Below are positions 9,681-18,157 of a stretch of 64,000 bases of DNA, piece by piece. A program made the translations under genes and the position numbers. Below the pieces are notes generated by a model that was given only the letters and a program-made list of their open reading frames with translations, was not told the DNA's origin and did no database searches. Source of the stretch: Lytechinus pictus (Eukaryota); assembly GCF_037042905.1 (NCBI RefSeq), contig NC_087252.1, positions 22,940,001-23,004,000 of the forward strand, written 5' to 3'. Within the stretch, counting starts at the first letter, position 1. The number at the start of each line of letters is the position of its first letter.

Positions 9681-12600
9681 CTGAAATGGTAGAGATGTGG
9701 TATTTAATGGATATATAGATTCGATCATCTTGTACTTGCTCATAACTTACATGTTTCTAGAACACCAACGAAGTCAAATGAATATGCAGCGTACGAATTG
9801 ACCCCGTGTGCTTCAATTACGTGTATTTAAATTATCCTTAAGTAAACCAAAATAATTCAGTTGGGAATGATTCGTCACCAAATGGAATGGTCTTTGATGT
9901 GATTTAGCTTTGTCAGGAATGTGAGCCCTGATGTATGCATTATTAAGTTCAAAATGTACTATTAGTGCAACAATATAGATATTATTTGAATTATTGGTGT
10001 AATCTTGCACCATATATGAATGAATAAGAGGGTGCAAATTTTTGTTTCTTGTTTGCACTAGAAAATTCTCGTTTCCATCGTACAAGATGCAAATAGTTTT
10101 CAAAAATGCATTTTTTGTATTGATATTTTCAAGTGGTATGTAGTTAATTGCATTGTCAAATATCATGGTTCTTCAAGGAGAATGGATGATTCAAGATTCA
10201 TTTCATTCAAGATTAATTCATTTGCACGGCATATGAAATTAATTTAAACATATATTTAACATAAATTCATATTAGGTTGATTGGTTTTTTAACATGCCGG
10301 ATATAAAATAGATTAATTAAAAAATTAAAAAGGGAAAAATAATGAACGAAAATTCGTTTAATCTTACCGACAACAGTTGGTTCGAGATCGACAAATACGG
10401 CCCGAGGAACGTGCTTTCCAGCCCCAGTCTCACTGAAGAAGGTGTTGAAGGAGTCATCACCACCTCCGATGGTCTTGTCTGATGGCATCTGACCATCAGG
10501 CTGGATGCCGTGCTCAAGGCAGTACAACTCCCAGCAGGCATTACCGATCTGGACTCCGGCTTGACCGACGTGGATAGAGATACATTCACGCTGTAATAAA
10601 TATGAAATAATATCTGCAGTAGATTTTTTTTTTTCGATTGATCTCAAAATCATAAAAGATGCGTAAAAAAATGACGGCCTTCAAGTTTTGAAGCCATGAG
10701 CAAATATATTGAACTTCCTATTGTTACTTAAAAAAAAAACCTTGGACCTTAGTCTGTTTGCACAAATGGATTGGTGTATGATCTTCAACGACATAACCAG
10801 GGCCGTGGGAACGGGTGTTGATGTAAATTTCAAAAGCAAATATATATATATATATATATATATATATATAGGTCATTTTGGTAACATTTTTTTCCATTTT
10901 TCACACATCTTTCAGAATACCCGGAGGTGCTGCCTTTGGCAAGGATTTTTTTTTTTTTTTTGGGGGGGGGGGGGGGGGTGCTTCACCCCGGTACCCCCGC
11001 TTCAAAGGGCCATGGACATAACGTTGCACGTTTTTAGTATTCCAGCAATTTTTTTCAAATTTTCTTTGTTTACCCTTGAAAAAATATCTAATTAACATTA
11101 TGCCTCCCGCAACCCGTTGATATAATCAAATTTAGAATTTGGAATTAAGCATTTGATATCTTCTAATAGTCACCAGTGAAGTATATATAAAATGGAATTT
11201 AAAAGAATGAAAAATAAGTTTAACAAAACAGTGGAATTTTAAACAAAAAAAAGAAAATAAACAAGGCTTAAGGACTAATTCTATAATGTCTGTTTTTTGT
11301 TGTTGTTCTCAGATGTACTAGTAGTCATGTCAAAAGTCGATTACTTTGAGATCAAGCTGATTCGCTCTTTTCTTGGGAGATATATACGTCAATTAGTTTG
11401 AAGAAAATCGACGGTTGCGTTAATATATTCATTATAATTTCTATAGACTAATAAAAAGTACATTTAGCAAATTTGGATACAAATTTAAAAGACTCGCAAT
11501 CTGTTATGTGTACCATAATTCGTAAATTATACAAATAGTATGAAGTACAATTAGAATTCCATTAGTAATAATGAAGTATAAGTCGAGGAGGATAGCATTT
11601 CCCCAGGTGTAAGGCAGTGAAATTCACACAACGCAATTCAAAGCAATCAAAATTCCACACACGGCCAGTTCTCTATAAAAGGCCCTAACCAATGAATAGG
11701 AACAATCTTTTCAAAGACGGCTAAGGTCATACAAAACACAAAGATCTTGTATGTAAAGAACTAAAAACAGGATTGCTTTCCAATCCACTTAAGTAGTTTT
11801 TCAAGATGTACACACCAAATAATCATTTGGTTCGTATAAATTTGTTGTATGTGTTTAATGGGGCGCCGTGGTCGAGTGGTTACGACTCTCGTCTTTCAAT
11901 CAGACGGACGTGGGTTCGATGTATGATGTGTTTTCCTTCTGCAATAAATATACCCACCATGTGCTGCACTCGACCCAGTTGAGGTGAATGGGTACCCGAC
12001 AGGATCAACTCCTTGATTGCACTGAGCGCTACAAGGCAGCTCGTGCTTAAGTCGGGGATAATAATAACAATGTGCATCGGAATAGATTATTTCTAGATAG
12101 ATTTCGCTATATTCCCACAAAATAAGGTCTGCATCTCAAAATTGACTTATGTATAATCGGGAGGGAATAACATTTTTTGATGCAGGGAGGGATCCTCCTC
12201 GACTTATACTTCATTATTACTAATAGAATTCTAATTATACTTCATACTATTTGTATAATTTACGAATTCTATTACGTAACATTCGTATAAGTCTTCAGAG
12301 GATAGCATGTTCAAAGCCACATATCAGAAGTCAATTTCAAACAATTTGAAAGTTATCTCCCATAATGATCTCATGAAGATCATATTATCTCAACGTGGGA
12401 CATACGATGTTGCCACTTGCCAAATTACAAAGTTTTATAACACTTCAGAATGAATTGACATTATGAAAATGTAATGAAGGAACACTGAATCAGCCAATGA
12501 TTATATATATAATTATTAATCAATTGTATCTCAATGAACAATCCGAGGAAATTAATCATTGAAATATTCCTCATCGATTCATCTTGCAAATTATCTCCAA

Positions 12601-15600: not shown

Positions 15601-18157
15601 CCATATAATAAAATACAAAAGAACAAGTGGAGATGTGACATCATCAGCCCACCTAATGAAAAATATTCATGACGACTGTTTTAAAAAAATATTGCTAAAC
15701 TTTAAAATTCAATAACTTTTATTTGTTATCCGATTTTGATGAAATTTTCGGCATTTTGCTTAGTGAATTCTCCTCTATTTATTAAGCTATTCATACTTTC
15801 AGCCCGGACCATCCCTTTAATATTACAAGCAACAAATTGATGATAGTTGAATTTCGTCTCAAAACTTGGCTTTTCCAAAATTAACAGCAAACTATATCCA
15901 CGCGAGCTGTGAGATATCTAGCGATAATATCGCTGTTGTGAAGCTCCTGGTACAACTGTTTAATACCTTGGTCACATTTGTTCTACGGCGGCCGTACGGC
16001 GAGTCGAAAACAGTCGTTTTATTCATTTTATACAAACCACCTCTATGTAGCTGGTACAAAAAAATGTTAAAACGGCTGTTTTCGACTCGCCGTACGGCCG
16101 CCGTAGAACAAATGTGACCAAGGTATAACTTGTTTAAAATTTAACACAGGAGCATATCGATCATCGTTTTTATAAGCAGTGAAGAAGATTCCCTGCGTTG
16201 TGCAAAATGCCTTTTGTGTACAATGTACCCTAGGTTATAAAGAGAGGCCTGCGCAAGTCCATGTTATAGCGATGTCAGTACTCCAAATCGATGCTTTTTA
16301 AACATGTTTTAACGAAAATGGTTCTTGTAAAAGATTCCCTATGAGGGATAATTCAAAATGTAGGCATAACAATTTTTATACATAGATACACATGTTCATA
16401 ATATATCCGGGAATGTCACCCAATATTATATGGCAAAAGATTCATGCCATTCTATGGCAAAGGAATGGTAGCATCTATAGAGTAAAAAACAAGAAGGAGA
16501 CCGTAGGCTCACGTCTCCTCAATACTCACCATGAAGATAGATGTGTAGTCACTGCCGTCACACTTGAAAAAGATGGTTCCTATTCTTTGGTTAGGGCCTT
16601 TTATAGAGAACTGGCCCTGTGTGGAATTTTGATTGCTTTGAATTGCATTGTGTGAATTTCACTGCCTAACACCTGGGAAATGCTATCCTCTGAAGACTTA
16701 TACGAATGTTACGTAATAGAATTATGATCGATCTTAATACAAAGATGTTATCAATCCGGTTGGTAGAATGTACAAATAACCATAATGGTATTCATGATAT
16801 TGGTTCGTGGATCATTTCATATCTATCTTCGTGTCTAACAACGCTATAAATAACGGGTGCACAATTGTCGTCTGAATGATTTATCGATCTCATTATAAAT
16901 GTTTCCGCTGATAGGTATGCTATAAGCCAGTTCACGGTTAGCTCATGATCAACTTTTCTCAAATGACCTTAATTTGTGACTTTTCATTAGGATAAGCACT
17001 ATCATTTTCAAATGTAGATGTTGCGTAAGCTTTAATACCGGTAGAGTATTCAAATTCTAAGAACAAAAGGCATTGTATAGACCAGGTGACTAGAATAGTA
17101 CATCAGGGATAAAGTTTGGAAATCTGTTTTATTGTCTGCCTTTGGCACATTTGACTATTGTTTAGGCTACTGTCAAATACCAGTGATTATGAAGACTCTA
17201 TTTATTACTCTTCAGCTTGGATGTGATAAATATTTTGAAAGGAATACATGAATAATCATCAAATCACAAATGCCTACGTCAGTGAATTTGAAAGCCACCT
17301 TCATGGTTGTCTCCAATGACCTTTGTCTGCTCGTGTGCAGTTTACAGCCGTGAACAGGCTTATTGCGTTGGGTAGCGTCGCCATGTTTGGTTACTATGGC
17401 AACGGTAATAAACATCGCACCTTCTTCGGACGCTGATAGGTTACTGTGTAATGTATACATTGTTGGAAATACACAAACCACTTTATGACGCTATTAAGTT
17501 AAGAGATAAGCCAGAGGGGGAGGGGGTTATGAGAGAGGGTGAGAGGGGGAAAGAGAGAGAGAGAGAGGGTGAGAAAGAGAGAGTGGGGGAGATAGAATGT
17601 AAGAAAAGAGGGGGGAGAATGAGATGTGATGGGAGTGTGATCGATGGAAGTGAGGAGTTGGTAGGGCTGCGTTCGTGTGTGTTTGTGTGCAAGAGCGTAA
17701 GAGAGGGAGAGAGAATAGAGAGAGAGAGAGGGGGGGGTGGAGAGAGGGGAAGGGGGAGAGAAGGGGGAGGTGGGGAGAGAGAAGAAAGGAAGAAATTGAG
17801 AATATGAGAGAGGGATGACATGAAGGGAGAAAGGACGAGAGAAGAGGGGAAAAGGAGGGTGAGATATGAAGAAGAAGGAAGATGAAATGGAAGGAGGGAG
17901 AGAGAGAGTGTGAGGGTGTGAGTGTGTGTGTGCTTAAGGGTGTGGGTGAGAGTGGGAGAGAATGAAAAAGAAAGAAAGGAGAGTGGCAGAGACTGTAGGA
18001 TCAAATGCATTTTTTTCTTCTAAAATATCATTTTATATTTAATTTCCAGAGATGTCTCCCGAATGTAAAAATTAATATCATTATTTTGCTGTAAAAAGAC
18101 AACCTCGGCATGAAAGAAATATCAATTCAGATTATAGAAATGTAATAAACTTACCAT
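8548..18157 (-). CDS. TUBA: Alpha-tubulin paralogue B, complete, 452 aa. Exons 18155-18157, 10368-10590, 8548-9680
   Basis: 3+223+1133 = 1359 nt; MREC N-terminus, K40 in [16 protein letters not shown] motif, C-terminus ...[10 protein letters not shown]-stop. Confidence 0.97.
10368..10590 (-). CDS. TUBA: Alpha-tubulin B exon 2
   Basis: 223 nt, CAG/GTAAGA boundaries, RECISIHV...DLEPTVV. Confidence 0.97.
10798..11014. mobile_element. hAT-like MITE, 8-bp TSD gacataac
   Basis: cagggcc ... ggccatg ends, flanked by a direct gacataac repeat. Confidence 0.7.
11860..12115 (+). mobile_element. tRNA-derived SINE nested in the DIRS-like element
   Basis: A-box-like gtggtcgagtgg, B-box gggttcgat, core gcactcgacccagttgaggtgaatgggtacc. 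Confidence 0.78.
15229..15820. mobile_element. MITE with TTAA TSD, nested in the DIRS-like element
   Basis: TIR agggatggtccgggctgaaa / tttcagcccggaccatccct; ~190-bp inverted arms. Confidence 0.88.
15964..16125. mobile_element. PIF/Harbinger (Tourist-like) MITE, TAA TSD
   Basis: ~50-bp perfect TIR taccttggtcacatttgttctacggcggccgtacggcgagtcgaaaacag; TAA on both sides. Confidence 0.85.
17390..17403. promoter_or_regulatory. Candidate RFX X-box in tubulin B intron 1
   Basis: GTTACTATGGCAAC fits the GTNRCY-AT-RGYAAC consensus. Confidence 0.5.
17515..17995. repeat. GA-rich low-complexity tract
   Basis: (GA)n/purine-rich; an equivalent tract sits in tubulin A intron 1 (2810-3360). Confidence 0.85.
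18155..18157 (-). CDS. TUBA: Alpha-tubulin B exon 1 coding part (ATG only)
   Basis: 'aacttaccat' = ATG|GTAAGTT, same context as paralogue A. Confidence 0.88.

Follow-up and report, generated by a model that had tools for sequence, protein, structure and literature searches.

The 64,000-nucleotide stretch of Lytechinus pictus DNA analysed here (contig NC_087252.1, positions 22,940,001 to 23,004,000; hereafter the window) carries at 11517-16723 a 5.2-kb insert, very likely one member of a family of DIRS1-like retrotransposons that are non-autonomous and mobilised in trans. Of a DIRS1-type element these retain the cis-acting parts alone, namely termini and internal complementary region (ICR) totalling about 0.45 kb, and about 3.8 kb of non-coding DNA takes the place of gag, the reverse transcriptase (RT)-RNaseH-methyltransferase region and the tyrosine recombinase (YR). 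The element works like, and descends from, DIRS1-like retrotransposons; one element of the DIRS order without open reading frames (ORFs) is already known in Chlamydomonas (TOC1).

A repeat search reproduced every repeat that a preliminary description of this DNA had reported, namely inverted terminal repeats (ITRs) with distinct outer extensions, a 117-bp ICR and an AATT shared by both element ends. The inverted repeat cores pair over 118 nt at 93% (11599-11716 with 16563-16680). At the left end 11510-11593 pairs with 12192-12275 at 94%, which over 11517-11593 amounts to 77 nt with two mismatches, and on the other side 12265-12308 is perfectly (100%) complementary to 16680-16723 over 44 nt. 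The 117-nt ICR at 12192-12308 is the reverse complement of both ends joined, and its halves overlap on the AATT at 12265-12268. A four-way alignment of the termini and the ICR resolves three zones. The first, a 38-nt extension, is confined to the 11517 end; the second is a divergent ITR part of about 39 nt, in which each end fits the ICR half that corresponds to it and the ends themselves agree only in part; the third is a conserved ITR of about 125 nt. Because the ICR and the extension sit at the window-left side, the sense of the element is the minus strand. The repeat search of the window returned inverted termini only, and no long direct terminal repeats of the A1-internal-B1-A2-B2 kind that PAT-like and Ngaro elements have. 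In window coordinates, the features of the element are as follows.

11517-11593, minus strand: 3' terminus, outer 77 nt, consisting of the 38-nt right extension (11517-11554) and the divergent ITR of about 39 nt; AATT core at 11517-11520; the same end occurs in at least 18 copies with different flanks.
11594-11720, minus strand: conserved ITR core, 3' side, delimited by the 118 nt at 93% and by alignment; inward-facing TATAAAAG motif at about 11670-11683.
11860-12085 (approximate limits), no strand: nested high-copy repeat resembling a short interspersed element (SINE-like), between the 3' ITR and the ICR; in the young subfamilies, absent from older relatives.
12192-12308, minus strand: ICR, which repeats the circle junction; complementary to the 3' terminus over 12192-12268 and to the 5' terminus over 12265-12308.
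12309-16562, minus strand: non-coding interior ("cargo"), family-specific, kept in the same roughly 20 copies.
15232-15817, no strand: nested inverted-repeat insertion resembling a miniature inverted-repeat transposable element (MITE-like), with three inverted repeat pairs; only in the window copy and its segmental duplicate.
15958-16126, no strand: nested palindromic repeat insertion with 59-nt arms at 98%; high-copy depth; other copies skip it (element positions 4441-4610).
16490-16493, no strand: point at which a segment is missing; about 710-750 bp are present here, beside the 5' ITR, in four other copies (BLAST breakpoints at element positions 4974/4977).
16563-16680, minus strand: conserved ITR core, 5' side; the minus strand has TATAAAAG at about 16596-16610; putative promoter firing inward.
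16680-16723, minus strand: 5' terminus, outer 44 nt, 100% complementary to 12265-12308; AATT core at 16720-16723; the same end occurs in 8 copies with different flanks.

This layout belongs to a dispersed family. In the window's own 812-Mb genome (contigs are given below as C-numbers and loci as L-numbers), queries with the left terminus and with the ICR found about 20 loci, at least 20 copies in all, at 94-99% identity; such searches score the best candidates only. Contigs of a second organism (organism B) contain pieces at 95-99% identity. Copies were analysed mostly as overlapping 3-kb loci, three of them being complete (the window copy, C17:20.42M and C8:24.88M). The ICR sits 600-680 bp inside the terminus in each locus, with the inverted ITR 4.2-7 kb away, and because the same layout recurs in at least 20 copies it is not due to chance. 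Across about 20 copies the ICR is 98-99% identical, its complementarity to the terminus is 97-100% in nearly all of them, and it is in these loci, and hardly anywhere else, that the interior is conserved. In eighteen copies, with 18 distinct left flanks, the flanking DNA is unrelated and starts exactly at AATT, in agreement with the AATT insertion core put forward earlier.

Fifteen copies, compared across 1.45 kb of interior, form two subfamilies, with substitutions of 0.3-2.7% within and about 5-6% between them, a pattern that indicates recent bursts of amplification. The window copy is an older member of its own subfamily, 2.2-2.6% from the others. One further copy, at C8:24.876M, is a segmental duplicate of the window locus including the alpha-tubulin gene (C8:24874592-24881748 against window 10700-17500, on the same contig and 1.9 Mb apart), with flanks 91-96% identical and a nested MITE common to both. 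It has lost 555 bp including the ICR and is the sole copy without one.

Insertion is precise and leaves no target-site duplication (TSD), as had been claimed from the window alone: in the 7 copies for which both flanks are available nothing beyond the 4-bp core is duplicated, and an empty site agrees. This site is supplied by three paralogous copies of the high-copy repeat in which copy C1:11147815-11153073 sits, and the precision of insertion follows from comparing empty with filled site at that locus. On the assumption that the pre-insertion site resembled these paralogues, GATGGAC-TATT-GGATATAC or GATGGAC-TATC-GGATATAC became GATGGAC-AATT...AATT-GGATATAC. The core at both filled-site ends is the element-like AATT and not a copy of the target TATT or TATC, as expected for a recombinase crossover and not for the repair of a staggered cut. 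Terminal variants are rare and change the outermost bases of the core, giving AATC and AATG at two 5' ends and GCTT at a single 3' end; these are the positions at which bases derived from the target would lie. The flank beside the 3' terminus has A at -2 in 17 of 18 copies and T at -1 in 13 of 18, against a background of about 31%; given this bias, the preferred target, AAT-A-T/AATT, resembles the element's own junction, AATAG/AATT. The family does not classify as a MITE or TIR DNA transposon, for which terminal inverted repeats (TIRs) and a fixed-length TSD made by a DDE transposase are diagnostic, as there is no TSD past the core and an ICR is present.

The preliminary description had also taken paralogue A in the window to show the empty state. 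The spacing and short, diverged matches speak for this, but only a 76-bp promoter-proximal block aligns (83%) and the insertion point itself is too diverged to read; we set this candidate aside, the C1 copy providing the better empty site.

Termini and ICRs have changed together. The 75-nt terminus differs between the family and the C9-type lineage by seven substitutions, and 7 of 7 recur in the ICR of the lineage concerned. Within the family the copies at C16:6.60M, C1:11.15M and C8:42.29M each carry a private substitution at matching positions of the terminus and the ICR of that copy. That independent double hits produced these three cases is very unlikely (about 1e-5 or less by a rough estimate). 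Other private changes in the family are unmatched between terminus and ICR, as expected for mutation after insertion. The matched changes are the footprint of end regeneration templated by the ICR, or of conversion between terminus and ICR, and postdate the loss of the coding region.

Neither gag nor RT nor YR had been detected in the interior before, and this finding held in every copy: the longest ORF of the window element has 103 aa, none is conserved among copies, and Pfam and tblastn gave no match. The six frames contain 26 stop-free stretches of at least 45 aa, with Pfam matches at chance level only. The 103-aa ORF is not under coding constraint, because it is interrupted or frameshifted in several copies and retains 62-67% amino-acid identity, with stops, in the sister subfamily although the subfamily interiors differ by only about 5-6%. 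In tblastn searches with DIRS proteins from two elements of the same genome (gag and the 952-aa RT-YR polyprotein of one, the C9 ORFs of the other), neither the complete window nor any copy of the family (at least 15) nor the diverged relative gave a match at E ≤ 1. The search does detect decay products, because in a positive control, the deleted DIRS element at C16:28.18M, gag and YR remnants were recovered at E 1e-20 to 1e-54. What the family lacks of a DIRS element is the coding part, gag, RT-RNaseH-methyltransferase and YR; because it departs from DIRS1-like elements in this respect only, we class it among their non-autonomous derivatives rather than their autonomous members. The earlier proposal that the cargo is unrelated to DIRS is an argument from the absence of similarity, and stands with that qualification.

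Coding DIRS elements with homologous termini and ICR do exist in the same genome, and together with the at least 20 copies that share ITR and ICR, the lack of conventional TSDs and the lack of RT/YR remnants in any copy they uphold the earlier proposal of a non-autonomous, DIRS-dependent family. The element L065 (C6:21254300-21260800) contains a gag-like ORF of 340 aa and an open frame of 952 aa with RVT_1 (3.5e-24) and Phage_integrase (1.4e-7) matches; its ICR follows the frame and is 87.6% identical to that of the family, its 5' terminus is 80% identical, and its ITR core holds the same TATAAAAG motif. Public homologues of the L065 polyprotein carry RT, RNaseH, Dam-type methyltransferase and YR domains, and among named homologues of the DIRS polyprotein many animal phyla are represented, at 35-41%. 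A second element, at C9:19.35M, encodes an RT, an RNaseH-like domain and an intact 303-aa YR (YR at 2.4e-10), with an ICR 90% and a 3' terminus 82% identical to those of the family. Overall the coding relatives match the family at 87-92% in the ICR and 80-88% in the termini. Outside these parts the family has no nucleotide similarity to L065 or the C9:19.35M element, and the shared cis set therefore amounts to about 0.45 kb. The closest match from a coding lineage (86-92% over termini and ICR) is an intermediate, the internally deleted DIRS at C16:28178080-28181824 (L020/L052), of whose proteins only gag residues ~57-221 and the final ~115 YR residues are left.

How would such an element move? 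Under the DIRS-1 model a sub-genomic transcript would start inside the 5' ITR, whose core may act as a promoter by analogy with that model (PMC7192593, PMC5633606). RT supplied in trans by a coding DIRS element, the presumed helper, would copy this transcript, and the cDNA ends would anneal to the ICR, which would template the missing terminal bases and juxtapose the ends. The resulting circle would be integrated by a YR, likewise supplied in trans, through a crossover between the junction AATT and an (A/T)ATT-like target preceded by A-T, leaving no target-site duplication.

Several observations weigh against this reading of the family. In two RNA-seq runs on rRNA-depleted samples, of which about 6% each was used, no read fell on sequence specific to the family, and the reads that fall on the element lie in the nested SINE/MITE repeats only; empty-allele or circle-junction joints were likewise not listed in the analysis of these two runs. 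The matched private variants could have another origin, gene conversion between terminus and ICR, and transposition through RNA is a step that we infer. The search for copies and an autonomous partner, suggested in the preliminary description, gave the copies, but no autonomous element with near-identical termini or ICR was found among the best candidates scored, which does not prove its absence; the best YR-bearing relatives reach 87-92% ICR identity, and among the candidates scored all ICRs of at least 95% belong to the ORF-less family. Nor does the C16:28.18M lineage have an intact close copy in the assembly, the best gag match elsewhere being 71%.

Could the insert instead be an ordinary autonomous DIRS1-like element whose gag, pol and YR have decayed past recognition? 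Its 5.2 kb does equal the typical length of autonomous mollusc DIRS1-like elements (PMC3266345) and its cis signals are DIRS-like, but copies that differ by only 0.3-6% imply a common master already without ORFs. Moreover, at least 15 copies gave no tblastn match at E ≤ 1 with intact DIRS proteins of this genome, and Pfam gave no signal, whereas the truly deleted element at C16:28.18M still shows its gag and YR remnants, and we regard such decay as highly improbable. A little less improbable, though still quite unlikely, is a DNA-level element in which a YR acting in trans excises a circle and reintegrates it in the manner of a Crypton, without reverse transcription and with the ICR as a relic. 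Such an element, too, would be expected to integrate at a short core and to leave no TSD, and no RNA was detected in the two sampled runs. However, cut-and-paste does not readily give two star-like copy-number bursts, the ICR has been kept at 97-100% complementarity in nearly all copies with the sole ICR-less copy being a segmental duplicate, and within single copies private variants have been copied between ICR and terminus, which requires a splint-templated retrotransposition step. A one-off rearrangement, or adjacent MITEs spread by segmental duplication, can practically be discarded: the C8:24.876M copy was indeed duplicated together with a tubulin paralogue, as its flanks at 91-96% identity attest, but 18 other copies have unrelated flanks starting exactly at AATT and a precise empty site exists.

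A further alternative concerns the interior, which might have a non-coding function of its own (in packaging, as a promoter region or as a long non-coding RNA) or be a piece of some other, unknown repeat family captured by template switching, making the family a chimera of two mobile elements. We hold this to be doubtful, but clearly less remote than the preceding alternatives. In its favour, element positions ~918-4847 (12434-16363) have a colinear relative of 65-84% identity at C9:13.17M that has no ORFs and no detectable ITR or ICR, and fragments of the interior also occur at C10:0.599M and C10:3.918M. However, such relatives are few and riddled with nested repeats, DIRS termini may have been lost or may be too diverged, and no terminal repeats of another kind were seen. 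The C9:13.17M relative and the fragments may be ancient copies with lost ends, or remains of captured sequence.

Among known systems, a non-autonomous DIRS1-like family finds its closest structural counterparts in molluscs and other metazoans. Like their DIRS1-like elements, it has imperfect ITRs with a conserved and a divergent part, a right extension only, and, near the 3' end, two adjoining ICRs with their overlap at the circular junction, an organisation published for elements such as AcaDIRS1/2 under the scheme lTer/rTer/ICR/rE, that is, left and right termini, ICR and right extension (Piednoel et al. 2011, PMC3266345). AcaDIRS1 of Aplysia californica measures 5222 bp, has ATT...ATT ends and a junction AAT, with an rE of 48 and ICRs of 45-88 (PMC3266345); the present family shares with it an ATT-type core at both ends, the lack of a TSD and a length of about 5.2 kb, but its conserved ITR core is about 120 nt against 32 nt and its overlap reads 4 bp (AATT) against 3. 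Unlike the metazoan DIRS1-like elements it has no gag, RT/RNaseH/methyltransferase or YR, and its interior is unrelated non-coding DNA.

The logic of ITR and ICR is also that of DIRS-1 of Dictyostelium discoideum (the Cappello 1985 model), where the ICR is experimentally essential and endogenous RT is able to copy in trans a truncated DIRS-1 RNA without coding competence (Malicki et al. 2020, PMC7192593); the full cycle for a protein-less element could not be shown in that assay (PMC7192593), whereas the present ORF-less family has multiplied in nature. The family is dispersed, while DIRS-1 inserts for the most part into its own sequence. Non-autonomous derivatives of long terminal repeat (LTR) retrotransposons, such as the large retrotransposon derivatives (LARDs) and terminal-repeat retrotransposons in miniature (TRIMs), offer another parallel in that terminal cis signals are kept around a non-coding interior and mobilised in trans; they have direct LTRs, a primer-binding site and polypurine tract, and TSDs of 4-6 bp made by a DDE integrase, in contrast to the inverted termini, ICR and recombinase-type insertion of this family. 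TOC1 is of the PAT-like, split-direct-repeat type and not of the ITR-plus-ICR type. This element of Chlamydomonas reinhardtii, described as a non-autonomous DIRS retrotransposon (PMC9940879), is likewise ORF-less, several kb long and of the DIRS order, its copy number varies between strains and it presumably uses the proteins of coding relatives such as TOC3; its host, however, is a green alga, and that of the present family an animal. A full-text literature search, with incomplete coverage and with repeat databases outside its range, found no other non-autonomous DIRS besides TOC1.

What can such a family teach? To our knowledge, DIRS is the least understood order of retrotransposons, and the model of its replication rests largely on one Dictyostelium element. 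We lean towards seeing here a natural, recently active, protein-less DIRS1-type family. If this is true, the entire DIRS cycle (reverse transcription, ICR-templated end repair, circle formation and YR integration) could be supplied in trans, about 0.45 kb of termini and ICR would suffice in cis even though the helper signals differ by 8-20%, and foreign kilobases could be captured and dispersed. A young ORF-less family would then serve as a natural deletion analysis that delimits the cis needs to termini and ICR, display ICR-to-terminus copying in real insertions, yield a target-site consensus of A-T beside an (A/T)ATT core, and show that the DIRS machinery is able to carry unrelated DNA. Annotation of transposable elements that is based on proteins will miss or misclassify such families.

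The host gene is an alpha-tubulin gene, as proposed before. Its exon 2 lies at about 10267-10590 on the minus strand, with the element upstream, and a promoter-like block at 16840-16915 is conserved with two paralogues, with the element downstream; RNA reads occur in 16781-16950 and none in the adjacent flanks. A location in intron 1 is therefore plausible.

Nested repeats account for part of the variation among copies. The SINE-like repeat at 11860-12085 has very high read and contig depth in contrast to the surrounding parts of the element, and the older relatives C13:5.19M and C19:3.36/3.38M are without the corresponding region (element positions ~277/344-540/591). A tRNA-derived head at 11860-11920 was considered and rejected, neither ARAGORN nor Rfam calling a tRNA there, and only the description as a SINE-like high-copy repeat is kept. 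The insertions at 15232-15817 and 15958-16126 are private to the window copy, except that its segmental duplicate shares the former; the former, high-copy by read depth, is absent from the C17, C10, C18 and C6 copies, which skip element positions 3716-4301. The extra ~710-750 bp beside the 5' ITR occur in the copies C10:16.83M, C18, C4:25.5M and C6:25.69M, and the C17 copy has a different deletion there. A piece of the interior of about 135 bp (14245-14383) is a separate short repeat with many other genomic sites at 78-84% identity.

Each ITR core holds an inward-facing CTCTATAAAAGG motif of the TATA kind (window 11670-11683, plus strand; 16596-16610, minus strand) that is conserved in the ITR of the autonomous relative L065, and downstream of the 16596-16610 motif the minus strand reads ATG followed directly by GTGAGT at about 16527-16535.

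Some loci are rearranged. At C1:26128049-26132524 (L041/L029/L040) two family copies stand head-to-head as an inverted dimer, with the junction near C1:26130280; about 11 bp separate the two at the join, element position 79/80, so that both lack the outer 78 nt, and the dimer could be a product of ITR-mediated recombination or of snap-back. Large insertions occur in the copy at C3:53260693-53266805, with a Ty3/gypsy-like integrase ORF between terminus and ICR, and in that at C19:10567380-10577558, which reaches 10.2 kb in total. At C11:14224097-14237769 a related DIRS-type ICR, 86% identical, recurs at alternating intervals of about 1.96 and 3.82 kb, which suggests a tandem or nested array of a related element. 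Finally, about 4 kb from the element, the window contains at 20432-23155 (minus strand) an intact 907-aa ORF of a non-LTR retrotransposon of the long interspersed element (LINE) type, which is judged from its sequence to carry an endonuclease and a reverse transcriptase.

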